Virus record (IMG/VR): IMGVR_UViG_3300027969_000039
Span: 62,001 to 126,000 of that record
Length of the DNA stretch: 64,000 nt
Reading direction: 5' to 3' (one strand)
Below are positions 4,675 through 58,160 of this stretch, piece after piece (position 1 is the first letter of the stretch; every line of letters begins with the position of its first letter). The notes beneath the pieces are model-generated. The model was not told where the DNA came from and ran no database searches. It worked only from the letters and a program-made list of their open reading frames with translations. Position numbers and translations under genes: made by a program.

Positions 4675-5514
4675 TTATGTCCACAAACTGTCTCTAATCT
4701 TAATTAAACGAATCATCATTTCAGTATCTTCTTTATCGTAGGCTTTTTCAATCTTGTCTAACAACTTATGAGCCTTATCACGAGATTTTATTTCATCAGG
4801 TGCTTTTGCACTCATACCAAGCCAAGTATCACCGTGCTTGTTACGTAAACTTTCACAGTATTCACTCCAGCCACTTGCTTTATATGGGTCAGGACGATTG
4901 CGATATGTAACTGTCCACCATGTGTAAAGTTCCTTAATCTCTTTAGCATGTAGTGCTTGACTAGTAGGTTTACCATAGTCGGGATCACTTTTGTCAACCC
5001 AATCACTATTAGTAAGAGTCATTGCCCAGTCAAGATGATCGATACCTGCTTGACTGCAACGCCAAGTGCGCCAACGCCACCAACCACTAGCATAGAAAGG
5101 AGGATCATATTTAGCACGATCTTCCTTGCTTCCCCACGCAATGTGGCTCCAGGCTTGTTCGACCTCGACAAAATCAACCAACTCATTAAATAAGCATGGA
5201 AGGAACCTACTGCCAACATCACTCCAAGAACCAGGCTTAATATCACGATGATGTGCGGTAAGAGCATGAGTACGAGTAACATATCGGTTATTAATGTAAT
5301 ACTTGACATCATAAATCTTTCTAATAGGATAAGTTACAAAATCTTGAAGTTTACCAAGACCTTCCTCAGCTAACCAAAAACGAATAGGGTTATAACCTTT
5401 GGTGTTGTTAGCCCAATCATTCCATTCTTCACTAGTGCCTGACTTGAGTTTGGGAGTTCCACGAACCCAATCAGCGAAAGGGGTGCAACTCCAGTAATTA
5501 CTATGTTGTGCCAT
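4675..5514 (-). CDS. hypothetical Trp-rich phage protein
   Basis: 279-aa ORF. Confidence 0.75.
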   Translation of the reverse strand: MAQHSNYWSCTPFADWVRGTPKLKSGTSEEWNDWANNTKGYNPIRFWLAEEGLGKLQDFVTYPIRKIYDVKYYINNRYVTRTHALTAHHRDIKPGSWSDVGSRFLPCLFNELVDFVEVEQAWSHIAWGSKEDRAKYDPPFYASGWWRWRTWRCSQAGIDHLDWAMTLTNSDWVDKSDPDYGKPTSQALHAKEIKELYTWWTVTYRNRPDPYKASGWSEYCESLRNKHGDTWLGMSAKAPDEIKSRDKAHKLLDKIEKAYDKEDTEMMIRLIKIRDSLWT

Positions 5515-10761: not shown

Positions 10762-10778
10762 GATAAAAGTCCAAAGTG

Positions 10779-10785
10779 ATAAATA
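10779..10785 (+). promoter_or_regulatory. T4-late-like promoter
   Basis: GATAAATA upstream of the plus-strand operon 10841-14840. Confidence 0.55.
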
Positions 10786-10840: not shown

Positions 10841-12523
10841 ATGAGATTTACCGAATTTATATCTGAGAACGAAAAGCCAGGATTATGGGCAAACATCCAT
10901 GCCAAACGTGACCGAATCAAACATGGATCCGGTGAGCGTATGCGTAAGCCCGGAAGCAAGGGTGCTCCAACAGCAGATGCATTGAGAAAGTCAGCAACTG
11001 ATGAAGCAGCTAATCCAGCACAGCAAGCAGCTATCGCTATCAATATGAAGAAGCATCATCAGAAGCCAAAAGGTGTGGCGGAAAGCGAGTTGGATAAATT
11101 TAAAAAGTATACCAGACCAGTTGTAAAGACTGAACCAAAGATCGAAAGAACAACTAATCCTGCAGGAAGAACAACTGACCATGTTGAATGGAAAGTTACA
11201 AGTCCGACGGGCGAGATTCACAGATATAAATCTAAAAAACAAGCACAAGAGCATTTTGATTCTTTTGGTCAGCAAGGTGTGGCGGAAGGCGACATGTATG
11301 GCGATCAAGAAGTAAGTTGGGAAAAAGGTGGTCGTAGAGCCCCAACTGGTGCATTTAAAAATCCTCATACCAGCGCATTAGGTCGAGCATTATATCGTGA
11401 CCTCAGCAAGCAACCTAAATTAAGCCCGCAACAAGTCCAACGCAACAAAGAGCGTTGGGCACAGCGTCAAGCGGAGCGTGAGCAAGGTGTGGCGGAAGGC
11501 TCTGAAACACCACAACAGCAACAAGTTCGTGCTGCAATTACTAAAGGCATGGAAAAATGGGATAGTAATAATAAGGCTACATATCAGAGTCAACCAACTA
11601 AAACTAATTATATGCCACCCAGCGGTTACGCTAGCGATTCATTGACAGGAGTAGATTCCATTGATCCTGATGGTACCGTGGTCATATCTCTTGGAAATAC
11701 TGGTGCCGAAGCCACAATTAAAAAATTAGCAACATTAGGTGGTATGCCCGGCATTAAAACTAGACAACTGCAATCACCAACCGTTTCATCTAGAGGTGTG
11801 GCGGAAGGCAGAAAGCCATTTCGTGATTTAAAATCTTGGGCTGACCACGCAAAATCACAAGGATTGAAAGTAAGCCCATCTGATCACATTGATTGGACAC
11901 ACGATGCTACTGATAAAGAAGGTAAGGTGCGTGGTAGATTTGTGACTACTAGTGTCCCACAAAATAGTCGAGGATTCATCCACCAGCAAGGTGTGGCGGA
12001 GGGAGAGAGTACTATTCTTTCTCCTGGAACACAAGTTACAGTACCTCACAAGGGAAAAATGGTTTCAGGTAAAATCGTTAGATATGATTCAGGCAAAGGT
12101 ATAGAGTCCCCAGCATATATTGTTGATATCAGCGAATACGAATCACTCATCGTTCCAGTTTCTAGAGTGAAGCAAGACATGGATGAAGGCGAGAATTGGT
12201 CAAAGCACAATAACAAACGTGCAGGCGGGATGAGTAAAAAGAGTGTAGCCAGTTATCGCCGCAGTCATCCTGGAAGCAAGATTCAAACAGCAGTCACAAC
12301 TAAGCCTAGTAAATTAAAGAAGGGCAGTAAGGCAGCAAAACGCCGTGCTAGCTTCTGTGCTAGAATGCGTGGCATGAAGAAACATCGTACTGGTGCGAAA
12401 ACAGCACACGATCCAAACAGCAACATAAATAAAAGTTTGCGTAGATGGCATTGCGAAAGTATTGAAGAACTACACGAATTAGTAATGCTTGCCGAACAAT
12501 TTATTAGGAACAATAAGAAATGA
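10841..12523 (+). CDS. modular putative internal-head polyprotein with GVAE-delimited modules
   Basis: N-terminus MRFTEFISE; five GVAE(G/S) joints separating unrelated 65-103-aa segments. Confidence 0.75.
   Translation: MRFTEFISENEKPGLWANIHAKRDRIKHGSGERMRKPGSKGAPTADALRKSATDEAANPAQQAAIAINMKKHHQKPKGVAESELDKFKKYTRPVVKTEPKIERTTNPAGRTTDHVEWKVTSPTGEIHRYKSKKQAQEHFDSFGQQGVAEGDMYGDQEVSWEKGGRRAPTGAFKNPHTSALGRALYRDLSKQPKLSPQQVQRNKERWAQRQAEREQGVAEGSETPQQQQVRAAITKGMEKWDSNNKATYQSQPTKTNYMPPSGYASDSLTGVDSIDPDGTVVISLGNTGAEATIKKLATLGGMPGIKTRQLQSPTVSSRGVAEGRKPFRDLKSWADHAKSQGLKVSPSDHIDWTHDATDKEGKVRGRFVTTSVPQNSRGFIHQQGVAEGESTILSPGTQVTVPHKGKMVSGKIVRYDSGKGIESPAYIVDISEYESLIVPVSRVKQDMDEGENWSKHNNKRAGGMSKKSVASYRRSHPGSKIQTAVTTKPSKLKKGSKAAKRRASFCARMRGMKKHRTGAKTAHDPNSNINKSLRRWHCESIEELHELVMLAEQFIRNNKK
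11072..12001 (+). repeat. five in-frame direct repeats GGTGTGGCGGA(A/G)
   Basis: copies start at 11072, 11276, 11486, 11795 and 11990; spacings 204, 210, 309 and 195 nt; three copies extend to AGCAAGGTGTGGCGGA. Confidence 0.95.
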
Positions 12524-13098
12524 AAAAACTACTAACGATACTTGCATTGACCTTCTTTGGTTCTGCATTTGCCGGAGAGATTACAGTATGTGATGGACAG
12601 TATGCATTATGTGCTGCTAGTACTTGCAAACCAACTAACAAAACAATTACTGGTAATAACGGCGTAGCATACCCAGAAGTAGAATGCCGTTGCCCAATAC
12701 TTAAAGGTCGTGCTATCGCTGATACATCAGCAGGTAACATGCAAGGTTCATGTGCTGCAACTGATGATAAACATGTTTGGAGTTTGTTTGCTCCTAAACT
12801 TTACTACCCACAAGAGGCTAGCAATTTTAGCAACAAACCAAAAGATAAAAAAGTAACTATACAAAAGTGTGATGCTAGTTTGAATCTAGGTGCAAAGTCT
12901 AGCAATTGCTTTAGTTGGAATTGTACGATAGGTAGTGATGGTATTGCACTATGCTCATGCCCAACTGGTCAAGTACCGGCAAATACTGCATTTTTAACAG
13001 AAGCAGGTCAAGGTAACCCAGAAGCATGTTCACAATACCCAGTAAGTTTACCAATCAAAGCGCAAGATAAGGCTGAAGCTAAGGAAGCAAAAAAATGA
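12520..13098 (+). CDS. secreted Cys-rich protein with internal duplication
   Basis: Sec signal ending AFA; 12 Cys in two halves, each with C-x4-C and CxCP. Confidence 0.7.
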   Translation: MKKLLTILALTFFGSAFAGEITVCDGQYALCAASTCKPTNKTITGNNGVAYPEVECRCPILKGRAIADTSAGNMQGSCAATDDKHVWSLFAPKLYYPQEASNFSNKPKDKKVTIQKCDASLNLGAKSSNCFSWNCTIGSDGIALCSCPTGQVPANTAFLTEAGQGNPEACSQYPVSLPIKAQDKAEAKEAKK

Positions 13099-14840
13099 AC
13101 TTTAAAGAATTACACGAAGGCGCAGAGCCAAATATGCCTGGTGCCCCTAGTGGCATCAAGATTATGACACCTCAGCAGTTCGTTGCTAGTGCAGGTGATT
13201 CAAAATCTGATGAAGAGGTATCAGAAGGCGGTAATGCATTCATGCCAGGCATACAAAATACGGCAGAATACAAAGCAGGTTTTGCAACAGGCAAGTTACC
13301 AGTTCCATATCCTGAAGGTACACAACAATATGCTAGCTATTACAAAGGAGTGATTGATAAGTCTACCCCTAATTTAAATAAAGGTACAGCAGGAAATTCG
13401 TTGACTGAATTTGCCCCTAGTGATGACGGTGATGATGGATTTAGTGAAGAAACACTAAAAGGTCTTGCAGCGCAATGGTGGAATGGTGATGAAGATCCTC
13501 GTGTAGAAAAATTATTGATGGCTGCAGGTTGGGAGATTGGTCAAGATGATGGGTATGACAACGGTGGTGTGTTTGTGGTGCGAGCCGGTGATGACAGTGG
13601 TCATAGTTATCTCAGTTGGCCAGCAGAAGAACTAAATCCTAATTTATCAGAAACACATTTAAATAGAATTCGTAGCTTATCTGGATTAGTTGAAGCAACT
13701 AAACTACCAGCACAAACTCGTGATTTGGATAGTCAAGAATTTCAAGACTATATGAAGCGTATCGTTGGTACACCTGATTTAGACAAAGAAGGTAATGTTA
13801 AAGTAGATAAAAAAGGTAACGAAAAGTATACTACTGGCAAGACCAAAGGTGACAAATACAAGATGCCTTACATCCATCGTAGTAGTGTAGTTACATACTT
13901 AAGCCCAGATGGTAAAACATATGATGAAGATGCAGTTAAACAAACATTAGCAATTCGTCCTAAATCATTATTAAAGCAAAATGAAAAGATGAAACATAGC
14001 AATGGTGAGTTTGAACAATTCTTCAATGTTGGATTTGCAGCATTAGTAGGAATTGCATTAGATGAACAAACTAATAAATTAATCATTGTTAATACTTGTC
14101 CAGGCGCTGGCTCTTGTAAAGTAGAGTGCTTTGCTATGAAAGGCGGCAAGATTCAATTCAAGGCTGCATGGCAAAGTGACGGAAGAATACTAACATATCT
14201 ATTAAATGATCCTGATGGTTTCTTCAATCAACTAAGTAGTGAAATATCTGCTGAGGCACAAGCAGCAGCAAAGGGTGATAAGAAATTCCCTAATGGTTGG
14301 CAAACAACAGTTCGCTGGCATGATGCTGGTGACTTCTTTAGTCCAGAATATTTAGACATGGCATTGAAGATGGCTGCTAAACATCCTGATGTTAAGTTCT
14401 ATGCTTATACTAAAATGGCTGGAGCAGCATTAGCGGATAAGCCAGACAACTTCATTATCAATTGGAGTGAAGGTGCTAACACTGCACAAGAGAAACAAAT
14501 CAAAGCACAAGATCCTAAGTTAGATAAAACAAAGAACAGTCGCATCGTTCCAGAGAAACTATTCTATGACTTATTGGCTAAGGACGAGAAGGGCAATTTA
14601 GCAAAGACTCCAGATGGTGCATGGCAACCTGCAGGGCCGCAAGAATTACAACAAATGAAACAGCGTATTGCAACAGAATACGGTATTAGTGCTAACTCTA
14701 TTTTGAGTTATACTGAGTACATGGCTAAGAGAAATTCAATCCCAGCTGGAATGAAGTACAATGTTATTGTTGCACCAGGTGAAGGTGATGTTAGTGCTAA
14801 CGACCCAGGCGTACTAAGTACCTTATTGCTAAGACATTAA
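13095..14840 (+). CDS. modular protein with C-terminal Gp88-like (Cys-cluster) domain
   Basis: MNFKELHEG leader; short modules; then CPGAGSCKVECFA, RWHDAGDF and FYAYTK motifs. Confidence 0.65.
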   Translation: MNFKELHEGAEPNMPGAPSGIKIMTPQQFVASAGDSKSDEEVSEGGNAFMPGIQNTAEYKAGFATGKLPVPYPEGTQQYASYYKGVIDKSTPNLNKGTAGNSLTEFAPSDDGDDGFSEETLKGLAAQWWNGDEDPRVEKLLMAAGWEIGQDDGYDNGGVFVVRAGDDSGHSYLSWPAEELNPNLSETHLNRIRSLSGLVEATKLPAQTRDLDSQEFQDYMKRIVGTPDLDKEGNVKVDKKGNEKYTTGKTKGDKYKMPYIHRSSVVTYLSPDGKTYDEDAVKQTLAIRPKSLLKQNEKMKHSNGEFEQFFNVGFAALVGIALDEQTNKLIIVNTCPGAGSCKVECFAMKGGKIQFKAAWQSDGRILTYLLNDPDGFFNQLSSEISAEAQAAAKGDKKFPNGWQTTVRWHDAGDFFSPEYLDMALKMAAKHPDVKFYAYTKMAGAALADKPDNFIINWSEGANTAQEKQIKAQDPKLDKTKNSRIVPEKLFYDLLAKDEKGNLAKTPDGAWQPAGPQELQQMKQRIATEYGISANSILSYTEYMAKRNSIPAGMKYNVIVAPGEGDVSANDPGVLSTLLLRH

Positions 14841-17537: not shown

Positions 17538-18380
17538 TTAAGTGCCCCATTCGTTTTTGAATAACGGCACTTGTAGTCTATCACTGTACCGCCATCCTTT
17601 TCGCATTGCCATTTCTGCAACCGCCCTATTATTAAGATTGTACACCCGCTCAACGCCACCACAAGGCATAAGATAGACATGACCACGAAAACCCCTCTTA
17701 CGATACGCATTTACTGCCTCCTCAGCTTCTTCCATATCCTCGTTAGTAGCTACTACAAATTTGAGATATGTATGCCCAACTTGGCTATATTCATAGATTA
17801 TGTCTGGGCAGATAGCATCATCCCACTTCTCACCACTGATGCTGAGTTTAGGACTGACGCTGAATGTGATAGAACCCATGCTACGACTTGTACACCATTT
17901 ATTCAAGAAGAATCGTAGATCCTGATGTAATGATTGTGTACCATTAGTCTCAAAAGTTAGTTCTTGTAAGCTACGCATCTTCTCGTTTGAAAGTAAATCA
18001 ACAAAACTACGCTGCCAACCTAGTAGTGGCTCACCACCAGTGATGACAAGATGCTCATCTAACCAACGCTTCTCTGGCAACATATCCATGATACTACTAA
18101 CAATACTATCAGTTTCAAGCATTGGACTTAAGTCTTTGAATCTGGGATCCCAACTCGCATAGCTATCACATCCTGTACTGACAAGTGGTAACATTTTGTA
18201 ATCAGTATACTTTGTCGGGTCGATATTATTTGCTTCCTCGCTTAGTTTACCTTTCGGCATACCAAAGCCTGCACATTTGAAGTTACATCCGAATGTTCGT
18301 AGAAATACTGAGGGGACACCCATGTATCTACCTTCACCTTGAATGCTATAGAATAGTTCTGCTATTTTTAATTTTGCCAT
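17538..18380 (-). CDS. queE: 7-carboxy-7-deazaguanine synthase (radical SAM)
   Basis: ELFYSIQGEG, VFLRTFGCNFKC, ITGGEP, ETNGT, SVSPK and RLQVPL motifs. Confidence 0.9.
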   Translation of the reverse strand: MAKLKIAELFYSIQGEGRYMGVPSVFLRTFGCNFKCAGFGMPKGKLSEEANNIDPTKYTDYKMLPLVSTGCDSYASWDPRFKDLSPMLETDSIVSSIMDMLPEKRWLDEHLVITGGEPLLGWQRSFVDLLSNEKMRSLQELTFETNGTQSLHQDLRFFLNKWCTSRSMGSITFSVSPKLSISGEKWDDAICPDIIYEYSQVGHTYLKFVVATNEDMEEAEEAVNAYRKRGFRGHVYLMPCGGVERVYNLNNRAVAEMAMRKGWRYSDRLQVPLFKNEWGT

Positions 18381-18383
18381 GTT

Positions 18384-19481
18384 TTATTGCCTGAATGAAT
18401 TTATGTCACCTAAATATACTTTTTTGTTTTTAAAAATATCATCTTTTAATATTTCTTTTAGTAAAATTTTATCTTCTGCGTTTAAATTTAATCTATCGTA
18501 CATAATGTTATCTAAATGTCCCCACTGCCGTATACTATTAAAATATATACCTGTCAAGTTTTCATATGATAATTGCCAATTAATATAGTCTTTAATTTCT
18601 TTATAATTACCTTTTTGGACAGTAAAAGAAGTACTCCAGCCAATAAAATTTTTAAAACTGTTACTTATAATCATTTCATTAAGAAATTTTAAATTTTCAT
18701 CTAATTTATCTTTAGATCCATTTATTCTTATCTTTGAATAAGTTTCATTTGAAAATGCATCGATACTTACTGTAATATGTGTGATATTATTCCATAATGG
18801 TTTTATTTGATTCCAGCGTGATTCTGTCATTAAAATACCGTTGGTCATTAGTTTTATTGTTAAATTTTCATTTAGATTTTTTGTTGACAATGTTTTTAAG
18901 TAATTCCAATAAGTAGGACTTGCAAAAGCATCTCCACTACCAGTAATGTTTATACTAACCTTTTCACCTTGTTCTAATAAATAATCAACAAGTTTTTCAA
19001 CTTTGTCATTGATATTATCTATTTGTTTATTTTCTCCCAATTTATGAAGTATTAAATTATTACGACAACTAGGACATTGCAAATTACATGATAAATCATA
19101 ACAAAAATGAATTATGATTGAATTAGAATTTTTATAAAAATCTAATAATTGCAAAGGTACAATTGTATTACCAGGCATTACTTTATCATTTAACATTTGA
19201 CTAATAAAAGGACAATAGTCATTGCAGTTTGTGAATTTACCCTCACTCATATCTGATATCATAGCTAGTCGTTCTGAATTATTAATGATATCTTCTATTG
19301 AATCTGTAATAATATTGCCGCAAAATTTTGGTAACCAAGAAAAACAACATATAGTAATATCACCATTGTGGTGAATTTCTAAATGTTTTGATATTTTATA
19401 ACAGCCGAAATTTTTTAAATATTCCTGTGTTCTTGCATACTCATTTTCTGATTTCATTAAAAAATTCATGTTATGATTCAA
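18384..19481 (-). CDS. radical SAM protein with N-terminal SPASM/Twitch-like domain
   Basis: CNLQCPSC (Cx3Cx2C), GSGDAF, MTNG; N-terminal GDITICC; markedly AT-rich. Confidence 0.8.
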   Translation of the reverse strand: MNHNMNFLMKSENEYARTQEYLKNFGCYKISKHLEIHHNGDITICCFSWLPKFCGNIITDSIEDIINNSERLAMISDMSEGKFTNCNDYCPFISQMLNDKVMPGNTIVPLQLLDFYKNSNSIIIHFCYDLSCNLQCPSCRNNLILHKLGENKQIDNINDKVEKLVDYLLEQGEKVSINITGSGDAFASPTYWNYLKTLSTKNLNENLTIKLMTNGILMTESRWNQIKPLWNNITHITVSIDAFSNETYSKIRINGSKDKLDENLKFLNEMIISNSFKNFIGWSTSFTVQKGNYKEIKDYINWQLSYENLTGIYFNSIRQWGHLDNIMYDRLNLNAEDKILLKEILKDDIFKNKKVYLGDINSFRQ

Positions 19482-19960
19482 TCTTTAAATTCATTATCTT
19501 CTCTGTGTCCTTGACGACCTGCCATGTTTGAATCAGTCTCACGTACTTCTACTTTACAGCACCAAACACGTTTGGCTTCTTCACTGCCGCAGTTGGGTAA
19601 GAAGATAGTGTTCACATATTCATATAAGAAATCACTGATACCTTCACATCCTGTCTTTTCAACCTCTGTAATTTTTGCTAGTTTAAGTTTACCTAGATTC
19701 AATAGATGTTCACGCATCGGGTCATCTTGTGCGACTAGTAATGTATGATCGAACCATTCTTCTAATTTTTCTTTGAGTGGTTTCAAGCCACCAAAGTCAG
19801 TCACCCAGTTTCGTGCATCTAATGTATCCGCTTCAAATTCAAAATGAAACGACATTGCGTAACCATGAATCATGTTACAATGACTATCTGCACGCCATTG
19901 ACGATAAGCTACTGGACCTATCTGTTTGTACGTTTTTGTACTGAAATATTTTTTTGCCAT
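19478..19960 (-). CDS. queD: 6-carboxy-5,6,7,8-tetrahydropterin synthase
   Basis: HCNMIHGY, DFGGLK, FDHT, GCE and VRET motifs. Confidence 0.85.
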   Translation of the reverse strand: MAKKYFSTKTYKQIGPVAYRQWRADSHCNMIHGYAMSFHFEFEADTLDARNWVTDFGGLKPLKEKLEEWFDHTLLVAQDDPMREHLLNLGKLKLAKITEVEKTGCEGISDFLYEYVNTIFLPNCGSEEAKRVWCCKVEVRETDSNMAGRQGHREDNEFKD

Positions 19961-19968
19961 GTTGTTCT

Positions 19969-20042
19969 CCTATGTTAATTATAGCATAGGCAGCAGAATT
20001 TGTAAAGCGGGATGATGACCGAAGACCGCTATCTTTATTTAT
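19969..20042 (-). promoter_or_regulatory. late promoter plus structured 5' UTR of queD
   Basis: ATAAATA (20042-20036); AGCGG/CCGCU stem with a cUUCGg-like loop; CCUAUG/CAUAGG hairpin overlapping the RBS. Confidence 0.45.
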
Positions 20043-20496
20043 CCTTTGATTCAGCTTGTACTACACGCTTACGCAAACTACTGCTACTGAAACTATGGTC
20101 ACGGCTATTGAATACTAATTCAATCTTACGCTTCTCGCAGATTGCTCTACCAGTAAAGTCTTTCTCCATGTACTCAACCCCTAGTATACGCACATCTACT
20201 GGCAATGTCAACAGTATGTCTTCCAAATCTTTTTCTGTATTGTAAACAACAATTTCATCTACAAAACGGACAGCACTTAAACTGATTTGGCGTTCAACAA
20301 TACTTTGAATGGGAGCATTCTTATCTGGTCTATCCCATTGTGCATTATTTTGTAACCCAGCAATGAGGTAATCGCAATGATTCTTAGCTTCACTAAGCAT
20401 TGCGATATGTCCTGCATGTAATATATCAAATTGCGAGAACACGATACCTATCTTTAGGCCTTGTAATTTTAGTTCTTTGATACGGTTGAATATCAT
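20035..20496 (-). CDS. cytidylyltransferase (TagD/RfaE-like)
   Basis: FDILHAGHI (HxGH), LIAGL, ER..L.AVRFVDE and SSSSLR motifs. Confidence 0.85.
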   Translation of the reverse strand: MIFNRIKELKLQGLKIGIVFSQFDILHAGHIAMLSEAKNHCDYLIAGLQNNAQWDRPDKNAPIQSIVERQISLSAVRFVDEIVVYNTEKDLEDILLTLPVDVRILGVEYMEKDFTGRAICEKRKIELVFNSRDHSFSSSSLRKRVVQAESKDK

Positions 20497-20765
20497 TCTT
20501 CAACTCCAAAAAAGTGTTCTTTAATTGCTACATAACTGTCAACACCACATTGAACATAACCATCCCAATGTGTGTCCTTCATCATAAGTTCATCTTCCAG
20601 CACAGGCAGATATTGTTCTCTTACTTGATTCATACATTCAGCTATAATCAATTCAGCAAGATTTTCTAAGTTTTGTTTGTCATCATCATGCCCGTATAAG
20701 CTAGACCGTTTTAATGCCCAATCAAATCCAGCCTGTTCAGCAAGTTGTTGAATTCGTTCGTTCAT
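20493..20765 (-). CDS. MNERI-family small protein, dispersed copy
   Basis: MNERIQQLAEQAG...ENLAELIIAEC...IKEHFFGVEE. Confidence 0.8.
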   Translation of the reverse strand: MNERIQQLAEQAGFDWALKRSSLYGHDDDKQNLENLAELIIAECMNQVREQYLPVLEDELMMKDTHWDGYVQCGVDSYVAIKEHFFGVEE

Positions 20766-21445
20766 TTCCCACCCCGAGCCAATTGATAGAATTCTGCTCT
20801 TGCTGCTGGATCACTTTTGAATCCACCACCTAATTTACTTGTAACAGTACTAGAGCCAGTATCTTCTACACCTCTTGATTTAACACAATAATGTTGTGCA
20901 TCAATCATGACCGCAACATCTTCTGTCTCAAGGATATATTGCAATGCGTGAAAGATTTGTTCTGTCAATCGTTCTTGTATTTGTGGACGCTTGCTAAAGT
21001 ATTCTACGATACGATTGATTTTACTCAATCCAAGTACTTTCTGATTGGGAACGTATGCCACAGTTGCTAGTCCATCGATGACTACAAAGTGATGTTCGCA
21101 ATTGCTTTGTACATTGATATTGCGTTCGCATACCATTTCGTTGTACTTCATCTTGTTATCAACTGCTGTACATTTAGGAAATGCCTCATAATCTAATCCC
21201 CAAAAGATTTCATTGACATACATCTTTGCTACACGTTTTGGGGTGTCAATCAGACTATCATCTGTTAAGTCAAGACCTAATGCTGTCATAATATCAGCAA
21301 ATAATACTTCAATGACTTCAATCTTGCCTTTACGGTCGATGATTTGACCTGTCTCTTTGATAGGAGTTTCAACTCCCATCTTAACCAAATGTTCGTGTAC
21401 TTTTTGACCCAACTCTGGATCTGTTTTTGTTTTATTATAACTCAT
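20762..21445 (-). CDS. folE: GTP cyclohydrolase I
   Basis: TPKRVAK, SNCEHH, GLSKINR, QIQERLT and HYCVKSRG motifs. Confidence 0.95.
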   Translation of the reverse strand: MSYNKTKTDPELGQKVHEHLVKMGVETPIKETGQIIDRKGKIEVIEVLFADIMTALGLDLTDDSLIDTPKRVAKMYVNEIFWGLDYEAFPKCTAVDNKMKYNEMVCERNINVQSNCEHHFVVIDGLATVAYVPNQKVLGLSKINRIVEYFSKRPQIQERLTEQIFHALQYILETEDVAVMIDAQHYCVKSRGVEDTGSSTVTSKLGGGFKSDPAARAEFYQLARGGK

Positions 21446-21480: not shown

Positions 21481-21518
21481 ATGTAAGCTACCGTTGTGTA
21501 GCTTACATATTTATTTAT
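21481..21518 (-). promoter_or_regulatory. tandem late promoter and 11-bp hairpin upstream of folE
   Basis: ATAAATAAATA (21518-21508) followed by the ATGTAAGCTAC-N6-GTAGCTTACAT inverted repeat (21481-21508). Confidence 0.55.
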
Positions 21519-21524
21519 CACAGA

Positions 21525-29931: not shown

Positions 29932-29960
29932 AGTATACATGCCTTGTGTAGAAAAGTCAA
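29932..29960 (-). promoter_or_regulatory. sigma70-type promoter
   Basis: TTGACT-N17-TATACT. Confidence 0.7.
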
Positions 29961-30565
29961 ACATTTTGCTGTTTTTCTACAATCTTTTTAACCACAGTAT
30001 TCAGTCCTGGGTTAATATGTAATGCGTGTGGCATTAAATGTGTTCTTACATAGTTACGCATATACTTCGTGTCATCATTGCTATTATCGTGACACCAATC
30101 AATTGATTTCTGTTCGCACCATTTTGTGAATTCGATTTTGTTTGTAGTTAGAAATGGGCGAACAACATTGTTTCTTTTTGCTGGGATAACTTTGGCTTGT
30201 CCATGCATTGCTGACCAAAGATATGTTTCTACGCAATCATCTAAGTGATGACCAGTTATCACTGGACCCAATGAATTGCCAATACTATCCAAAAAATCAT
30301 AGCGTTCATTACGCCAATGTTCTTCCATGCTAAGTTCTTTGGGTTTACTCTTTTTAATCATCCCAATCATCAATGGAAGTTTTCGTTCTGTGCAGAAATT
30401 AGCAACAAATTGTAAGGCTCGTTCGCTATTCTCTGTTCCATGATGGAAGAAAGCGCAACCTACCTTATGCTTGTGTGAAAGGAAATCAGTGATGGCAACA
30501 GAGTCAACACCGCCACTAAGTGCGACAACAACTTCTTTTGGTAATGGAAAGAGTAGTTTTAGCAT
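29957..30565 (-). CDS. tilS: TilS-like PP-loop ATPase (catalytic domain only)
   Basis: ALSGGVDS, TGHHLDD.VET, VVRPFL, D.SN...YMRNYVR. Confidence 0.8.
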   Translation of the reverse strand: MLKLLFPLPKEVVVALSGGVDSVAITDFLSHKHKVGCAFFHHGTENSERALQFVANFCTERKLPLMIGMIKKSKPKELSMEEHWRNERYDFLDSIGNSLGPVITGHHLDDCVETYLWSAMHGQAKVIPAKRNNVVRPFLTTNKIEFTKWCEQKSIDWCHDNSNDDTKYMRNYVRTHLMPHALHINPGLNTVVKKIVEKQQNV

Positions 30566-31176: not shown

Positions 31177-31203
31177 TATGTATTTATCAATGGTGCTCAC
31201 TTT

Positions 31204-34914: not shown

Positions 34915-35355
34915 TTACGCTCGGGCTTTCTTTAGAGTACTACGAATCATCCATTGATGTTTTTCGTGAGCATCTAGCCTCTCAGCGATAAAGTTTGCTA
35001 TACCTTGTTTGTTTTCTTGTGTAGCTGAAGCAAAGCAATGGTTGAGTAAATCAATCATCTTACTGTTATCTTCGAATAATTCAGCAAACATTAATTCAGC
35101 ACGAGGAATTTTAAGTTGGTCTTGAATGATAGATAATTCAGCGTAGCGTGTTAAACTGCCGGGTGCATAACTATCCAATGTACGAATGTATTCAGCAACT
35201 TTATCTACTGCACTATATACTTCTTCATAGAAATTACCAAAGAATTCGTGATATTCAGGGAAGTCAGGTCCTTCAACATTCCAATGAAAGTTCTGTGCTT
35301 TGATGGATAGTGAATTAACGCTAGCCAATAATACTTTTAAATCTTCTGCTAACAT
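34915..35355 (-). CDS. dps: Dps ferritin-like protein
   Basis: FHWNVEG..F...HEFF..FYEE...VD.VAEYIR; HEKHQWM. Confidence 0.9.
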   Translation of the reverse strand: MLAEDLKVLLASVNSLSIKAQNFHWNVEGPDFPEYHEFFGNFYEEVYSAVDKVAEYIRTLDSYAPGSLTRYAELSIIQDQLKIPRAELMFAELFEDNSKMIDLLNHCFASATQENKQGIANFIAERLDAHEKHQWMIRSTLKKARA

Positions 35356-37367
35356 TATTGCTGTCCTTGTTGTTGTAGTAACTGTTTTGCCTTTTCTACA
35401 CTAAGCATTGGGCGAGGATGTGATCCATCTATAATACTTTGTAGATATTCTGCACTATAACCACTTGGTGCTTTTGCTGCTGGTTGTTCATCTGATGGTG
35501 CTACTTGAGTAGCAACTGGTTTACCAGTTAAACGATTAATACCAGGATCTTGATCTGGTAGTACACGACCGTGTGCGGCACCGCCTAATGCCATAGCACC
35601 TGCTAATGCTGCACTACCTAATGCGCTTTTCCAGCCTTCATCTACTTGGTGTACACCTGAAAGTATTGCTGATTCTTTTATTGGTACACAGTTATTAACT
35701 CTAGTATCACCCTTCATCTTAGTGCCTTGTTTTTTATAACCAGTCCAGCATTTAGGATCCATACGTTGTTTTTCTTCATCCATAGTTTGATTACCACTAG
35801 CTTGATCAATTCTGCGTTGTAAGTTAGCTTGCTCATCCGGGGTTGGAGCACCTGGATTACCTCCTGACACTCTTAAGTTTGCAGGTTTTGGTTGTTTTGC
35901 ATTACTTGGTGCTGCTGCTTGTTGACTTTGTTGTGCTAATTTACTAAATTCTTTAGCACCATAACTTACTGCCGCAGTTCTATTTCTTCTCTTTAAACTA
36001 TTTAATCCATCTAGTACATCATCTATTGCATCTTTAGCATCATCGACCGTTCTAAAAGATGATGGTCCAGATGATGGTGCGGCTGCTTGCCCTGCACCAC
36101 CTGATGCTGCACCAGCTGATGGTGCGTATCCTCTACCGCCACTTGCTGCTGACATGCCTGAACCTATTCTACTAGCTGGTACATTACTAGTTGTAGCTGC
36201 ATTGCTTGTAGTTTGTGGTGCTGATGCTCTGGTTTCAGGATTGACTTCACCAGTGTGACCCACATGTTGCATAGCTTGATTGGCTCTTGATGCGTCATAA
36301 CCTGTCATTTTACCGCCACCGTATGCATCTTTCATTCCGGCATATGTTCCTTTTACACTACCAATTGCATCACCTACCCCACCCGCCATACGACCCAATA
36401 ATCCTTGTTTGGGTTGTGCCGGCTGAACCGGTAACGGCTTTGCAGCAGGAAGTTTAAAGTTAGTAAATAAATTATTCAATGTCTCCTGTGGTACACCTGC
36501 TTTAATCATAATATCTGCAATTTGATCACTATCGGTTGGCTTATTTGCTTTATTCCATGCTTGCAATAATTTGTCAGCAGTAATCTTTGTTGTTAAGTTT
36601 TGCCCTTTGGTTTTAGCCCAATCTAGTATACCTTCATCAACTTGTTTTTTATGCTCATTAACTATTCTACCAATTAATCTATAAATTTGTGATTCAGATA
36701 GTTCAAATGATTCATTTCTCATTTGTAGACCATTGACTTCACCCGGCTTAGCAGGAACTCTTTTTGGTGCTATCGCTGATAGTGCAGAAGTAGCCGTAGT
36801 TGGTGGTTTAGGTTGTACTCTAGGAAATTTACTAAAATCACCTGTATCTGTTCTTGTACCATCTGATGGACGACCAACAAGTTCTGTACCTTTGTTTAAT
36901 GCAGCAGTTGCAGCAGCTTGTCTTTGTTGTCTTGCTGCTTGTGCAGCTTGTCCTGCAGGAGTAGTTGGTTCTTCTGCTGCTGAAACTGATGGATCTGCAC
37001 TTGTTGATTGTTTTAATCCTGAAGCTGCAACTGGATTAGGAGTGCTAAACATATCTTTAACTTTGCCAATTGCTGTTCTATTGTTGCCGCCACCTACTAA
37101 GTTAGCAGCACCACCTGCTGATTGAATCTCTTGTGCGCTTTTGAAAATTTGTTGAATTTGTTGAGGGTCAACTGCAACTCCTTCTTTAATTTTTTTTGCA
37201 TCATTATCAAATTGTTTTTTAGTAGCAGTATTGATACCTTTAAAACGTTTGTCGCCTTTTTTGAAGTCACCTTCACTATCAGCTTTGCTAGCATTAGCCG
37301 CAGCAGCAGTTTTGTATTTTGCCAACTTGTCGTTAGATAGTTCTGCTAAAAATTCATTGGTTCTCAT
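35355..37367 (-). CDS. modular putative internal-head polyprotein
   Basis: MRTNEFLAE leader; Ala/Gly-rich linkers; joints IKEG, VDEG and MDEE; CWTGYKK...NCVP module. Confidence 0.7.
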   Translation of the reverse strand: MRTNEFLAELSNDKLAKYKTAAAANASKADSEGDFKKGDKRFKGINTATKKQFDNDAKKIKEGVAVDPQQIQQIFKSAQEIQSAGGAANLVGGGNNRTAIGKVKDMFSTPNPVAASGLKQSTSADPSVSAAEEPTTPAGQAAQAARQQRQAAATAALNKGTELVGRPSDGTRTDTGDFSKFPRVQPKPPTTATSALSAIAPKRVPAKPGEVNGLQMRNESFELSESQIYRLIGRIVNEHKKQVDEGILDWAKTKGQNLTTKITADKLLQAWNKANKPTDSDQIADIMIKAGVPQETLNNLFTNFKLPAAKPLPVQPAQPKQGLLGRMAGGVGDAIGSVKGTYAGMKDAYGGGKMTGYDASRANQAMQHVGHTGEVNPETRASAPQTTSNAATTSNVPASRIGSGMSAASGGRGYAPSAGAASGGAGQAAAPSSGPSSFRTVDDAKDAIDDVLDGLNSLKRRNRTAAVSYGAKEFSKLAQQSQQAAAPSNAKQPKPANLRVSGGNPGAPTPDEQANLQRRIDQASGNQTMDEEKQRMDPKCWTGYKKQGTKMKGDTRVNNCVPIKESAILSGVHQVDEGWKSALGSAALAGAMALGGAAHGRVLPDQDPGINRLTGKPVATQVAPSDEQPAAKAPSGYSAEYLQSIIDGSHPRPMLSVEKAKQLLQQQGQQ

Positions 37368-37369
37368 AA

Positions 37370-39475
37370 TTATGCTTTCTTATTTTTGATAGATTTTTTG
37401 CTTTCGTATGCTATAGAAGCACCGGGTCTAGAAGAAGATGTATATCCTCTATCTTGTAATCTTGCTGGTTCATCACCAGTAGCTGAATATGGAGTGTTAC
37501 TTAGATTGTTTGAATCATGTTGTCTCTGATATTCTTGGTTAGATGCATCCATTTCATCTTTACTAACTAATGGAGGTTGAACATCTGCACGATGTAATTT
37601 GAAATTATAAAACTTGATACCTTTTGATTTCATAAAATCTTTAACTGCTTCTGAAGCCTGTCCCGGGGAGTTATATTCTGTTCCAAGATTGATATCTTTT
37701 GTAATTGATTTACCATCTACTTGAAAAGTAATTTGAGCAACAATAGGTTGTATTTCATGTGCATGTGCTCCTGCCCCGCCCAATGCAGCAGCACCTGCTA
37801 GTGCAGCACCTGCTAAATTACTTTTCCAACCTTCTTCTACTTTTTTCTTAGCAGCATCCCATGCAGCATCAGTCTTTACATTGTATTCTTTGCCACCAGC
37901 GCCAATGTCAGCAACTCTGCTACCAATATCTTTTTTAGTTTTTACAACAGCTTTATTGTGTTTGTTCACACTCTTTTGCATTAATTTACCGAAGTCTGGA
38001 TTGCGTTTAAGGGCCCGTTCATCTTCTGGACTTCTTGAACTTGCTGCTGCTGTTCTCAAATCACCTAAGTCAAATGCTTCCCTCATTCCTGCTACTTTGC
38101 TACCTTGAGTGTTAGCTGCGGTACCGGTACGGCTGGCTTTCATCTTATCTCCACCGCCACCAATGTGTCTACTACCATAATCGGTCTTGTCTGCCTTGCG
38201 TGGCTTTTTATATGGTAATTGTTGAACATTACCACCTTTACTTAAAAATGCTTGTAATGCAGAATCATCTTCCGCTACACCTTCAGCACTATCAGTAGCT
38301 AATACATCTGCAACTGTGCCAATATGATCGTTTGCTACTGTGATATAACTGTATTCCCATGCATCTAATTGATTACCTTGCTTCAACATCTGATGTATCT
38401 GCTTGCAATTCTTTGCAATATTACGCAACTCTCCCATAGCCATTTGTGGAATCTGTTCTCCACCATCACTATCTTCGTATGCAAGTCCACCGGCGATAAC
38501 ACCAGCACCTTCCGTTACCCCTTGCTCTGCTTGATCCATGTACCATTTAAGAATTTTTAGTAATTCAGTAAGTGATTCTTGCCCTTCAGGATTACAGTAG
38601 TTCTTAGCCATTCTAGCTAAGTCGTACATTGTTCGTAAGTTGCTGGTGCTTACATCACCTTCATTCATACCTATCTTACGCATCACCGCTGGAGAAGCGA
38701 TTTTTTTTATCGCTTCTTTTTTTCCTACTTGTGCTGCCCTATTGCTTATTTTTTGTGATACATCATCATAATGTTTTGCCAATGGATTCATATAGCCGCC
38801 ACCTAATGCATTATGCACCTCAGGCTTCATTGCTTGATTACTTTTGTTTTTAGCTAATTGTGCGGATCTTTGTAACAGATCAGAACTGAGTTCATTGATA
38901 GCATCACTATCAGGTTGCATCTCTTGACTGCTGATTAGATAATCCATCACATTAACCATCATACCTTTTGCTGCGCCAATCTTCTCTGATACCCACTCGG
39001 GGAATTCAGATTGAACGGATAATCTCTTATCTAAATCACTAGCAGCACGGGCGATAGTGTGTAGACTGTTCTTTAATGTGTGACCTTCGTGTTCACCATG
39101 GTCTAAGTCATGCTTAACAAATCCAGTTCTTCTTAGTCTACCTTGACCCGGGATAACGATTAAGTCTTGTTCTGCAATTTCCTCTTCGTTGACTTTTGTC
39201 ATGCTTGCTTTGATTTCAGCTTTTGTTTTTCCATATTTCTTTTGAAATTCAGCAGTAGTTAACTCTGTTAAATCTATTGATAGTTCTTTAACTTTGCTTT
39301 CTGTAATGCTATTAGCGTAAGGCCCTTTCTTTTTAGCCTTCCCTTTCATTACTTGTTGTACAGGTTTCAGTCCCGGAACATTAACATTTTCACGGGTTTG
39401 AGTCATCATAGGCTTTGCTACGGTTGCGACTGACCCTGCTGTGGTTGAATTTTCTACTATTTGCTTAAATCTCAT
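37370..39475 (-). CDS. modular putative internal-head polyprotein
   Basis: MRFKQIVE leader; joints QGVTEG, EGVAED, INEL, MNEG and VEEG; ATAAATA upstream (39505-39499). Confidence 0.7.
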   Translation of the reverse strand: MRFKQIVENSTTAGSVATVAKPMMTQTRENVNVPGLKPVQQVMKGKAKKKGPYANSITESKVKELSIDLTELTTAEFQKKYGKTKAEIKASMTKVNEEEIAEQDLIVIPGQGRLRRTGFVKHDLDHGEHEGHTLKNSLHTIARAASDLDKRLSVQSEFPEWVSEKIGAAKGMMVNVMDYLISSQEMQPDSDAINELSSDLLQRSAQLAKNKSNQAMKPEVHNALGGGYMNPLAKHYDDVSQKISNRAAQVGKKEAIKKIASPAVMRKIGMNEGDVSTSNLRTMYDLARMAKNYCNPEGQESLTELLKILKWYMDQAEQGVTEGAGVIAGGLAYEDSDGGEQIPQMAMGELRNIAKNCKQIHQMLKQGNQLDAWEYSYITVANDHIGTVADVLATDSAEGVAEDDSALQAFLSKGGNVQQLPYKKPRKADKTDYGSRHIGGGGDKMKASRTGTAANTQGSKVAGMREAFDLGDLRTAAASSRSPEDERALKRNPDFGKLMQKSVNKHNKAVVKTKKDIGSRVADIGAGGKEYNVKTDAAWDAAKKKVEEGWKSNLAGAALAGAAALGGAGAHAHEIQPIVAQITFQVDGKSITKDINLGTEYNSPGQASEAVKDFMKSKGIKFYNFKLHRADVQPPLVSKDEMDASNQEYQRQHDSNNLSNTPYSATGDEPARLQDRGYTSSSRPGASIAYESKKSIKNKKA

Positions 39476-39528
39476 GACGGTTTCCCAAAGTTATAGAGTA
39501 TTTATCAAAATACCATAATAAGGAAACT

Positions 39529-45257: not shown

Positions 45258-45293
45258 GGTAAATACTCCATTATTAATAGAGTATTTATCATT

Positions 45294-58116: not shown

Positions 58117-58160
58117 GGTTAGTCCTTATTATGTATTTATCAATAGGGATTAAATCAGTA

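Follow-up and report, generated by a model that had tools for sequence, protein, structure and literature searches.

A phage cassette polyprotein whose unrelated modules are joined by a conserved in-frame junction

We found that a jumbo-phage gene is built from unrelated small protein modules joined by one nearly invariant ~19-base in-frame junction, and comparisons show that this junction is where modules are swapped between genes and phages. The junction probably also lets the capsid protease cut the modules apart, although cleavage is inferred from sequence and structure prediction rather than shown. The gene lies in a 64,000-nucleotide stretch (the window) covering positions 62,001 to 126,000 of the IMG/VR record IMGVR_UViG_3300027969_000039, part of a genome of at least 171 kb. 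We found no prior description of such a junction.

A repeated junction in a mosaic polyprotein gene

ORF 10841-12523 (560 aa, a 62-kDa protein) holds five in-frame copies of GGTGTGGCGGA(A/G). The exact 12-mer GGTGTGGCGGAA starts at 11072, 11276, 11486 and 11795, and a copy with one mismatch (GAG) starts at 11990, giving spacings of 204, 210, 309 and 195 nt. None of 100 shuffles reached the 7 matches observed across the window (mean 1.9). Copies 2 and 3 share the 20-mer AGCAAGGTGTGGCGGAAGGC. The six segments fall into six different BLAST clusters and are therefore mutually unrelated. The original prediction had described these five copies, the dissimilar segments between them and the unusual codons of the repeat, and this observation was confirmed. 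It had missed a sixth, decayed copy at 12171-12192, three further copies in two other genes of the window, and the wide occurrence of the phenomenon in uncultivated phages.

The features of the locus are as follows; a slash marks the module boundary, and viral contigs are labelled L followed by a number.

10778-10785, plus strand: GATAAATA, a T4-late-promoter-like box 55 nt upstream of the polyprotein start; promoter function is inferred.
10841-12523, plus strand: cassette polyprotein ORF, translationally coupled to 12520-13098 and 13095-14840.
10841-10867, plus strand: N-terminal leader MRFTEFISE, resembling a T4 capsid-targeting sequence (CTS) and ending in I-x-E.
10868-11083, plus strand: module A, comprising A1 (aa 10-54, the GLWANIHAKR module, a standalone 50-aa protein family, phrog_16028) and A2 (aa 55-81, a leader-type segment ending in KPK-GVAE).
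11072-11083, plus strand: junction 1 (KGVAE/S).
11084-11287, plus strand: module B (68 aa, pI 9.3), predicted to be a small beta-beta-beta-alpha unit.
11276-11287, plus strand: junction 2 (QQGVAE/G).
11288-11497, plus strand: module C (70 aa, pI 9.9).
11486-11497, plus strand: junction 3 (EQGVAE/G).
11498-11806, plus strand: module D (103 aa, pI 8.2).
11795-11806, plus strand: junction 4 (RGVAE/G).
11807-12001, plus strand: module E (65 aa, pI 9.7).
11990-12001, plus strand: junction 5 (QQGVAE/G, with GAG for Glu).
12002-12187, plus strand: module F1 (aa 388-449), predicted to be a small beta-barrel with weak resemblance to Tudor/chromo-barrel/SH3 folds.
12171-12192, plus strand: decayed junction 6 (KQDMDE/G; full heptapeptide KQDMDEG), with 77% nt identity to the reference copy and codon for codon in register with QGVAE/G.
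12188-12520, plus strand: module F2, DUF6321 (very basic, pI 10.8).
13095-14840, plus strand: GP88-domain gene (Pfam GP88) with leader MNFKELHEG; it has no junction in the window (EEVSEGG occupies the position), but its orthologues carry 1-3 cassettes there.
35355-37367, minus strand: leader-bearing large basic protein (MRTNEFLAE) without a GVAE site, probably of the same cargo class.
37370-39475, minus strand: third carrier gene (701 aa, leader MRFKQIVE), with junctions at 38270-38281 (EGVAE/D, GTA variant, 1 mismatch) and 38510-38521 (QGVTE/G); GATAAATA lies upstream.
39529-40935, minus strand: second carrier gene (468 aa), with a phrog_36119 N-terminal domain and, by eye from the sequence but not confirmed by Pfam, a nucleotidyltransferase-like motif and a GNAT-like motif; one exact junction at 39793-39804 (KGVAE/E) is followed by an 87-aa terminal module, and AATAAATA lies upstream.
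58507-59604, minus strand: leader-bearing protein (MRATEFITE) with a protein-kinase-like domain, probably of the same cargo class.

The DUF6321 module matched the Pfam model PF19846 above its gathering score (aa 460-536, 38.3 bits versus a cutoff of 28.5, E 2e-9). It is standalone or C-terminal in many PHROG families, and more than 2,700 metagenomic relatives have varied N-terminal content. AlphaFold modelling of the whole polyprotein without an alignment was poor (pLDDT 46.5), with only module B reaching pLDDT 70-80, and was not used for conclusions. A MAFFT alignment of module fragments to the full protein misplaced the fragments and was discarded. By contrast, an alignment-based AF2 model gave F1 a pLDDT of 70-78. 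A Foldseek search with F1 returned only weak Tudor/SH3-like matches (E about 4e-3, TMt 0.7-0.8) and DUF6321 matched only itself, and no function could be assigned from the fold search.

The T4-late-promoter-like variant GATAAATA is positionally suggestive. All ten window copies point toward a downstream gene, including the PHROG 'virion structural' genes 50260 and 55570 and the GVAE genes 10841 and 37370, but the count itself is not significant (10 versus 5.3 expected). TATAAATA, which we also considered as a late promoter, was essentially absent (1 copy).

The junction is spelled with rare codons across many phages

The junction, (A/G)AG-CAA-GGT-GTG-GCG-GAA-GGC, encodes (E/K/Q)QGVAEG and recurs in at least 120 viral contigs. 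It is read in frame in 223 of 227 cases. In 96 independent contexts, the wobble bases are 83-97% fixed. GTG is used in 90 of 101 motif Val codons, compared with 12.7% elsewhere in the same ORFs (binomial P 7e-68), and GCG in 93 of 101 motif Ala codons, compared with 6.2% (P 5e-102). Within the window, GTG is 12% of Val codons and GCG 7% of Ala codons. Pairwise silent-site identity is about 0.80-0.94 at the motif, as derived from the wobble-base frequencies, whereas it is 0.47 in DUF6321 of the same loci.

A tblastn search of cultured relatives with the L141 polyprotein found nothing, and the window protein hit only the A1 and DUF6321 modules, present as small genes in cyanophages and pelagiphages. 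In cellular genomes, the 18-mer is background in GC-rich genomes, and only three low-GC in-frame cases were found, all on short contigs binned into metagenome-assembled genomes (MAGs).

Modules are exchanged at the junction

To test whether the repeat is an anchor for gaining, losing or shuffling cassettes, as had been proposed, we compared homologues for module presence or absence with breakpoints at the repeat. Homologues are not colinear, architectures differ at a syntenic locus, and breakpoints lie inside the repeat. L010 shares module B and both junctions at 100% nt identity over 219 nt, although its flanks are only 76-93% identical (88-93% for the backbone), and identity switches inside the repeat. 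Module B is also shared at 86-91% with L040, L067, L068, L069 and L070, bounded by the repeats. L024 shares module D at 99.1% nt identity over 328 nt in an otherwise unrelated gene and contig, with identity starting in junction 3 and ending in junction 4. Module C is absent from L067, in which B is joined directly to D, and from L008. L004, L006, L059 and L174 are 92-93% identical to the polyprotein gene from junction 5 onward but differ upstream of it. The A2 segment forms a ~35-aa N-terminal leader ending in GVAE in other proteins (L005, L011, L020 and L174).

The same exchange was seen in other carrier genes. Three alleles of the GP88-domain gene, L021, L015 and L020, read leader-X-body, leader-P-Q-X-body and leader-Y-body, respectively, while their flanks are about 100% identical. 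The L122 homologue of the third carrier gene carries a different cassette, and a C-like cassette sits in the L122 homologue of a different carrier gene from the polyprotein. Twelve further pairs share exactly one module at 95% or more, and some ORFs end in GVAE-stop. These architectures recur in independent assemblies (L001-L003, L008/L009, L021/L022 and L035-L037/L054), and the identical polyprotein gene occurs in three independent metagenome assemblies on contigs of 171-303 kb. These data strongly support the recombination-anchor role.

No dedicated recombination system was found in the window

No integrase or recombinase family, including an IntI- or Rci-type enzyme, was found among about 60 window genes scanned with Pfam or PHROGs, the window being 64 kb of the larger genome. 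The core has no dyad symmetry, inverted-repeat partner or attC-like hairpin, and showed no significant local folding (z -1.25 to +0.36) and no Rfam match. All copies within the gene are direct and on the coding strand, and the cassettes are in-frame pieces of one ORF. A GIY-YIG gene lies beside the polyprotein in L096 and L118, which raised the possibility that the junction is a homing-endonuclease target, but this does not fit the retention of many sites in the endonuclease-bearing genome.

Indirect evidence that the junction is a protease site

The leader MRFTEFISE, like MRTNEFLAE, MRFKQIVE and MRATEFITE, resembles at the sequence level the T4 CTS MKTYQEFIAE and the N termini of T4 gp24 (MAKINELLRE), gp22 (MLKEQLIAE) and Alt (MELITELFDE). 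The pattern is enriched five-fold, occurring in 33% of GVAE ORFs and 8.8% of other ORFs, and is present in 90 of 120 database homologues, although the expression used to detect it matches only a third of GVAE ORFs. Leaders of 11-20 aa end directly in GVAE in L173, L097, L111, L127 and L160. Upstream of DUF6321, where the DNA word has decayed, a hydrophobic-x-Glu (Phi-x-E) followed by a small residue is kept in 33 of 34 homologues, which read VAE/G, MAE/G, LDE/G, VDE/G and similar. By contrast, only 24 of 41 contexts after the A2 leader keep Phi-x-E. Junctions 5 and 6 fall in segments with pLDDT below 50 that flank a folded unit in the predicted structure. T4-type prohead proteases cut after Glu in short x-x-E motifs, and giant-phage proteases cut after AXE or SXE at multiple sites per substrate.

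The phage belongs to the T4 superfamily: its PolB is closest to those of Atu_ph07, CBB and GAP32, and the window has a clamp loader and a gp31-like gene. No prohead protease or major capsid gene was found in the window. L096, L118 and L141 carry GVAE polyproteins next to gp20, gp21 and gp23 homologues, and the gp21 homologues in L096 and L118 have the conserved H-P, GVSSRG and PSAP blocks. In L118 the protease lies at 4794-5420 and the polyprotein starts at 8617. However, a protease-profile scan returned only the L118 lineage, which shares no genes with the window, and 79 other protease-anchored head loci contain no copy of the word. Adjacency to head genes is thus the exception and is only weak evidence. 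In addition, the terminal modules (A1 and DUF6321) also occur as free genes in podoviruses; T7-type podoviruses are not known to have a T4-type prohead protease.

Interpretation and alternative explanations

We favour, with moderate confidence, the view that ORF 10841-12523 is a mosaic cassette polyprotein of an uncultivated T4-superfamily jumbo phage, consisting of a T4-type capsid-targeting leader followed by six to seven small, mostly basic, mutually unrelated modules. What the comparisons show is that the junction is the point at which modules are inserted, deleted, replaced and moved between alleles, between different carrier genes and between unrelated phages; because it is read in one phase, exchange stays in frame. 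The mechanism and the protein-level role are inferred. In this view, exchange happens by the phage's general homologous recombination or template switching on the short identical anchor, as proposed for T4-type PeSL linkers, and needs no dedicated recombinase. The DNA spelling, rare codons included, would stay fixed because only cassettes that keep the anchor continue to be exchanged and homogenised, although purifying selection on the DNA or RNA for some other reason cannot be formally separated from homogenisation. The encoded peptide would also be a gp21-type prohead-protease site, cut after Glu. After capsid targeting, the polyprotein would be cut into 6-13 kDa products that stay in the head and are probably ejected with the DNA. 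Presence in the virion, cleavage and ejection are all inferences.

The original interpretation is therefore partly supported. The recombination anchor is strongly supported, the proteolytic joint is plausible and gained indirect support, the integron- or shufflon-like assembly system holds only as a loose analogy, and virion cargo is likely but unproven.

An unlikely but surviving alternative is that the junction is only a recombination linker and flexible interdomain spacer, and that the protein acts uncleaved as an intact beads-on-a-string 'polyvalent' protein. All of the exchange evidence applies equally to this possibility, polyvalent phage proteins such as N4 vRNAP can be packaged unprocessed, no cleavage has been observed, and no protease was seen in the window. 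However, a mere spacer would not need to keep Phi-x-E plus a small residue after the DNA word has decayed, nor would it explain the short leaders ending exactly in GVAE or the enrichment of T4-CTS-like leaders.

A dedicated site-specific system, in which a specialised recombinase recognises the ~19-nt core and excises and integrates cassette circles, is much less likely. Sharp breakpoints at a short conserved core, cassette gain, loss and replacement, terminal 'empty' junctions (GVAE-stop) and strict nucleotide conservation are in its favour, and only 64 kb of the genome was visible. Against it are the absence of a recombinase among the window genes scanned, the lack of symmetry or structure in the core, the direct orientation of all copies, and the efficiency with which T4-type phages recombine on less than 50 bp of homology.

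It is also very improbable that the spelling is conserved for an RNA- or translation-level reason, such as ribosome pausing on rare codons, an internal Shine-Dalgarno-like pause or an RNA element, with recombination as a by-product. GTG, GCG and GGC are rare codons placed exactly at domain boundaries, the word is G-rich, and the GAG variant creates GGAGG. However, no significant RNA structure or Rfam family was found, the GGAGG-forming variant is the minority at 17%, and no start codon consistently follows. Pausing would not require one exact spelling across genomes of 30-50% GC, and it does not explain 99-100% identical cassettes ending in the repeat.

Chance, recent tandem duplication or chimeric assembly at the short repeat can be all but dismissed, even though all relatives are metagenomic contigs and short repeats can confuse assemblers: no shuffle reached the observed count, the modules are unrelated, the repeat (22 nt or less) is shorter than the final k-mers that assemblers normally use, identical architectures recur in independent samples, and more than 2,700 protein-level relatives show the same mosaicism.

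A more far-reaching possibility, which we regard as doubtful, is a sub-genic, integron-like payload platform in which a pan-phage pool of hundreds of small effector cassettes is mobilised, possibly as excised circles and possibly by a dedicated enzyme, through one ~19-nt site. That site would be at once the recombination site, a phase-keeping splice point and the capsid-protease cleavage site. A phage could then re-assort the set of proteins it injects, one module at a time, without ever breaking the reading frame or the processing signal.

If the dual role holds, this is a simple natural design for combinatorial protein payloads, in which one short sequence guarantees exchangeability at the DNA level, preservation of the reading frame and release of each module by the capsid protease. 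It would explain how uncultivated jumbo phages diversify the proteins they carry into the host. It extends the classical 'linker' theory of modular phage evolution from genes to protein domains, and defines a searchable marker that flags hundreds of unknown candidate injected effectors or anti-defence modules. It also suggests an engineering route for packaging arbitrary proteins in T4-type capsids. Even if cleavage proves wrong, the evidence for a nucleotide-conserved in-frame recombination junction shared across many phage genomes stands on its own.

Comparison with known systems

The closest analogues are the PeSL (promoter-early stem-loop) cassettes of T4-type phages (Arbiol et al. 2010, PMC2839356; Comeau et al. 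2014, PMC4122927) and the gp38 glycine-rich motifs. Like the junction, PeSLs are short conserved linkers flanking variable units in T4-superfamily genomes, and units are inserted, deleted and replaced between close relatives with breakpoints in the linker. PeSL linkers give mini-circles, less than 50 bp of homology suffices in T4, and the authors themselves compare PeSLs to integrons while considering general phage recombination on short homology sufficient. PeSLs are, however, intergenic, about 100 bp long, carry an early promoter and a stem-loop terminator, and move whole ORFans. The junction is about 19 nt, lies inside an ORF in a fixed reading phase, has no stem-loop, moves sub-genic protein modules and also encodes a probable protease site.

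In T-even tail-fibre adhesins, conserved in-frame motifs (gp38 glycine-rich motifs and His boxes; Trojet et al. 2011, PMC3157838, citing Tetart 1996/1998) similarly separate variable segments, and exchanges within or near them produce chimeric proteins. The glycine-rich motifs are fixed in number and order and form the structural core of one domain, and none of the segments can be deleted. Here, the number and order of modules vary freely, the modules are independent folds, and the motif lies in a flexible linker.

T4 internal proteins, Alt and giant-phage ejection proteins processed by the prohead protease (gp21; SPN3US gp245; phiKZ) have an N-terminal ~10-aa capsid-targeting leader ending in (I/L)-x-E, cleavage after Glu in short x-x-E motifs, several sites per substrate, basic small products and highly variable cargo between related phages. 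The leaders found here match at the sequence level, whereas cleavage here is only inferred. The known cases are single proteins that lose a propeptide; none is described as an array of unrelated cargo modules separated by one repeated site, and none has a nucleotide-conserved site.

Polyvalent proteins of phages and conjugative elements (Iyer et al. 2017, PMC5512222) are also multi-domain mosaic proteins predicted to be packaged and injected, and some domain types (lysozyme-like, ParB_N, deaminase and GNAT) are shared with GVAE proteins. They are large, with recognisable enzymatic domains and processing by embedded peptidase domains, and no common linker is described (the word 'linker' does not occur in the paper). 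The window protein does not have the two or more recognisable conflict-related domains (MuF, ParB, methylase, ART, peptidase and so on) of that class, as only DUF6321 was detected. Among 48 GVAE proteins, only a few carry GNAT, ParB_N, Glyco_hydro_19, LysM or deaminase domains, and most modules are 55-135 aa with no known family.

With integron gene cassettes and shufflons, the junction shares an abstract logic, an array of exchangeable units bounded by a repeated site with expression from one upstream signal. However, neither an IntI tyrosine recombinase with an adjacent attI site and Pc promoter nor an Rci recombinase was found in the window, the repeats are neither attC hairpins bounding promoterless ORF cassettes nor inverted sfx repeats, and the units are not ORFs but in-frame protein segments.

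An in-frame repeat shared by three genes

The open reading frame (ORF) at 10841-12523 (plus strand, 560 aa) contains five in-frame copies of a short repeat read as G-V-A-E, which lie at spacings of 204, 210, 309 and 195 nt:

11072, GGTGTGGCGGAA
11276, GGTGTGGCGGAA
11486, GGTGTGGCGGAA
11795, GGTGTGGCGGAA
11990, GGTGTGGCGGAG

None of 100 dinucleotide-preserving shuffles reached the seven window-wide matches observed (mean of 1.9), and copies 2 and 3 share a 20-mer. The six segments between the copies fall into six separate BLAST clusters. In 75 crudely called genes (GC 37.8%), GTG makes up 12% of Val codons and GCG 7% of Ala codons, and VAE tripeptides without the preceding Gly use ordinary codons. 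These results confirm the repeat as it was first observed.

The original prediction had, however, overlooked three points. First, there is a sixth, decayed copy, which is codon for codon in register with Q-G-V-A-E-G and sits exactly where homology to DUF6321 begins. Second, the same word occurs in two other genes on the minus strand. Third, the junction is not private to this genome. The additional copies in the window are as follows:

12171-12192, decayed copy, AG-CAA-GAC-ATG-GAT-GAA-GGC, Q-D-M-D-E-G
39793-39804, minus strand, exact copy, KGVAEE
38270-38281, minus strand, GTA variant, EGVAED
38510-38521, minus strand, QGVTEG

We also found that the first module of the polyprotein (GLWANIHAKR...PGSK, 10886-10976) is a weak paralogue of the N-terminal half of DUF6321 (ENWSKHNNKR...PGSK, 12197-12293), with several short direct repeats lying about 1,311-1,329 nt apart. 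Between the polyprotein and the GP88-domain gene, and translationally coupled through ATGA overlaps, lies a gene for a 192-aa Cys-rich protein (12520-13098, plus strand) with a signal-peptide-like N terminus (MKKLLTILALTFFGSAFA), for which no family match was found.

Genomic context

To place the genome, we compared its family-B DNA polymerase with known sequences and found it closest (43-49% aa identity) to T4-superfamily jumbo myoviruses, namely Atu_ph07, Phosso, Vibrio 2.275.O, XaC1, CBB and GAP32. The window also encodes a T4-type clamp loader, a gp31-like 'head morphogenesis' protein, PhoH, a ClpA/B-like ATPase, UvdE and two small 'virion structural' families, but scans of its genes revealed no prohead protease, major capsid protein or recombinase. 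The identical polyprotein gene lies on contigs of 171, 231 and 303 kb from three different metagenomes. Further features of the window include a full-length ClpA/ClpB-type chaperone and a 7-deazaguanine (queuosine-type) biosynthesis set, which suggests that the phage hypermodifies its DNA:

46000-48261, minus strand, double-AAA+ chaperone (753 aa) with Clp_N, AAA, AAA_2 and ClpB_D2-small domains
17538-18380, minus strand, QueE-like radical SAM gene
18384-19469, minus strand, second radical-SAM gene
19478-19960, minus strand, QueD-like gene
20762-21445, minus strand, GTP cyclohydrolase gene
29957-30565, minus strand, QueC-like gene

A candidate late promoter, GATAAATA, occurs ten times (555-562, 10778-10785, 20036-20043, 21512-21519, 31181-31188, 39499-39506, 45283-45290, 50880-50887, 58134-58141 and 62063-62070), and every copy points toward the downstream gene, most within 100 nt of a start codon. 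It resembles T4 TATAAATA, which itself occurs only once in the window.

A widespread junction conserved at the nucleotide level

We next tested how far the junction extends beyond this genome. The 16-mer AAGGTGTGGCGGAAGG occurs in at least 120 viral contigs, often as two to seven copies within 1-2 kb. In 77 loci chosen by protein patterns away from the repeat, 96 independent contexts (flanks less than 70% identical) gave the consensus (A/G)AG CAA GGT GTG GCG GAA GGC, encoding (E/K/Q)QGVAEG. The wobble bases are fixed at 97, 89, 92 and 83%, whereas the flanks carry no information. Inside the motif, GTG is used in 90 of 101 Val codons, against 12.7% elsewhere in the same ORFs, and GCG in 93 of 101 Ala codons, against 6.2% (binomial P of 7e-68 and 5e-102, respectively), whereas GGC is used for the following Gly in 75% of cases, against 23%. 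Pairwise third-base identity is 0.47 at conserved four-fold codons of DUF6321 in the same loci, but about 0.80-0.94 at the motif (derived from the base frequencies of the 96 contexts), even between non-homologous contexts. In loci found by the DNA word alone, 223 of 227 copies are read as GVAE, and 220 of those lie in ORFs of at least 100 aa. Thus, peptide and spelling are conserved together.

By contrast, in 596 Gb of cellular genomes the 18-mer is background: 53 of 58 occurrences lie in genomes of at least 50% GC, and only three low-GC in-frame cases were found, all on short contigs binned into MAGs. The only array of the junction found in cellular genome records (3-4 in-frame copies, 39% GC) is on L326 (CAILDT010000116.1), a 9-kb contig binned to an uncultured Bacteroidetes MAG, which is probably a mis-binned phage contig but might hint at the host.

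The junction is the exchange point

To determine whether modules are exchanged at the junction, we compared the window gene, whose modules we lettered A to F from the N terminus, with other loci (numbered with the prefix L). Relatives L004-L010, L017, L040, L059 and L174 share the flanking genes (UvdE upstream and the GP88-domain gene downstream) at 66-93% nucleotide identity, so this is one orthologous locus. Its module content nevertheless differs. The window reads A-B-C-D-E-F, whereas L008 lacks C and has extra modules before F, L010 has a different leader followed by B and then another module, L067 joins B directly to D, and L093 is A-F. The boundaries of blastn hits coincide with the repeats.

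L010 shares module B plus both junctions at 100% over 219 nt, while its neighbouring sequence is 76-93% identical, and the alignment shows unrelated sequence up to AAGGTGTGGCGGAA and again after GGTGTGGCGGAAG. At about 10% backbone divergence, 219 identical bases cannot be vertical inheritance. Similarly, L024, an unrelated contig and gene, shares module D at 99.1% over 328 nt, bounded by junctions 3 and 4. In L024 (6329 region), the right-hand junction of the transferred module reads GGTGTGGAGGAAGG (G-V-E-E-G); one base change has altered the peptide after transfer, which shows how junctions start to decay.

Near-identical alleles gave the same picture. Three alleles of another carrier gene, the orthologue of window gene 13095-14840, have about 100% identical flanks and read leader|X|body (L021), leader|P|Q|X|body (L015) and leader|Y|body (L020), where X, Y, P and Q denote cassettes, and every breakpoint lies in GGTGTGGCGGA(A/G)GG. 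L028 and L165 show another replacement, and 12 further protein pairs share exactly one module at 95% or more. Cassettes also move between different carrier genes (L122 and L124). From 200 loci, 557 modules fall into 345 clusters, and internal modules have a median length of 78 aa. A few ORFs end in GVAE-stop or in GVAE plus two to seven residues, which is easier to explain as a recombination remnant or docking site than as a pure protease site. In the protein database, more than 2,700 relatives at E of 1e-5 or better show the same pattern: the best hits match only 20-49% of the query, at 60-98% identity, in proteins of 308-966 aa, and they contain 171 GVAE sites where composition predicts 1.2. 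Identical architectures recur in independent assemblies, which argues against chimeric contigs.

Inferred mechanism of exchange

Although the comparisons show where modules are exchanged, how they are exchanged is an inference. The core has no dyad symmetry or inverted partner, no significant folding (z from -1.25 to +0.36) and no Rfam match. All copies are direct and on the coding strand, and no recombinase gene was seen in the window. T4-type phages recombine on short homologies, and conserved linkers (PeSLs) are documented to mediate insertion, deletion and replacement of ORFans through mini-circles; the authors of that work already drew the analogy to integrons. In-frame conserved motifs are also exchange points in gp38 adhesins. 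We therefore favour homologous recombination or template switching on the 14-21-nt anchor. In this view, the fixed spelling, rare codons included, would be maintained because only cassettes that keep it remain exchangeable and are homogenised. A dedicated enzyme is not excluded, as the window covers only 64 kb of the genome. In L096 (3241-3987) and L118 (7870-8592), an ORF whose N terminus (MKPYTYLIKHRPTGQVYYGVRS) looks GIY-YIG-like by eye sits between the major capsid gene and the GVAE polyprotein, mirroring T4 segD between genes 23 and 24, and it could locally stimulate recombination.

A putative protease site

We then asked whether the junction may also be a protease site, a role that is likewise inferred, from sequence and a structural model alone. 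T4 internal proteins carry a capsid-targeting sequence of about 10 aa, MKTYQEFIAE, which is removed by gp21, and T4 gp24, gp22 and Alt start with MAKINELLRE, MLKEQLIAE and MELITELFDE, respectively. The SPN3US and phiKZ proteases cut after AXE and SXE, often at several sites per substrate. Consistent with such processing, the polyprotein starts with MRFTEFISE, and other window proteins start with MRTNEFLAE, MRFKQIVE and MRATEFITE. The leader pattern occurs in 33% of GVAE ORFs, against 8.8% of other ORFs in the same loci (Fisher P of 4e-11), and in 90 of 120 database homologues. Several proteins have leaders of 11-20 aa that end directly in GVAE, for example MRATEFIIE-GVAE-G in L173. The window genes with further features bearing on this reading are:

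58507-59604, minus strand, leader MRATEFITE and a protein-kinase-like domain (phrog_15752, annotated as a T7 0.7-type kinase), a candidate injected kinase
35355-37367 and 37370-39475, minus strand, two adjacent large basic proteins with T4-CTS-like leaders, each with ...V-(D/E)-E-G-W-K-S followed by an Ala/Gly-rich hydrophobic segment (AALAGAxALGG)

As the SPN3US ejection protein gp53 is cleaved at AQE|GWKE, the latter two may be related ejection proteins whose mature part begins with a membrane segment.

The most telling evidence comes from decayed sites. At the boundary before DUF6321 the DNA word has decayed in most homologues, yet 33 of 34 keep hydrophobic-x-Glu followed by a small residue (VAE|G, MAE|G, MDE|G, LDE|G, VDE|G, MEE|G, LNE|S and others). 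P3 is restricted to M, L, V or I, P2 is free and P1 is always Glu, against about 5% expected by chance. After A2, the leader-type second part of module A, the signal is weaker, at 24 of 41. An AlphaFold model built on a 34-sequence alignment places junction 5 and the decayed junction 6 in segments with pLDDT below 50, flanking a predicted folded beta unit. The predicted products are 6-13 kDa and mostly basic (pI 8.2-10.8), and T4 internal proteins are likewise described as highly basic. In L096, L118 and L141, a GVAE polyprotein lies just downstream of T4-like portal, gp21 protease, scaffold and gp23 genes. By contrast, 79 other protease-anchored loci lack the word, the window phage's own protease was not seen in the window, and A1 (the first part of module A) and DUF6321 also exist as free genes in podoviruses. 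Cleavage at the junction is likely, but on present evidence remains a prediction.

Comparison with known systems

The interpretation offered in the original prediction is partly supported: its recombination anchor is borne out by comparison, its proteolytic joint is likely but inferred, and its likening of the system to integrons or shufflons holds only as an analogy. Full-text searches for the peptides GVAEG and QGVAEG, for DUF6321 and for related concepts found no prior description, and no cultured phage was found to have this architecture. The system is not a member of the integron, shufflon or PeSL families, because defining features of these families were tested for and not found, in the case of recombinases within the 64-kb window, and only the last module belongs to a named family, DUF6321. 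Functionally, it works like PeSL-mediated modular shuffling and like gp38 or His-box domain swapping, but at sub-genic scale and with an in-frame linker of about 19 nt, whereas its cargo logic resembles that of T4 internal proteins, giant-phage ejection proteins and 'polyvalent' proteins.
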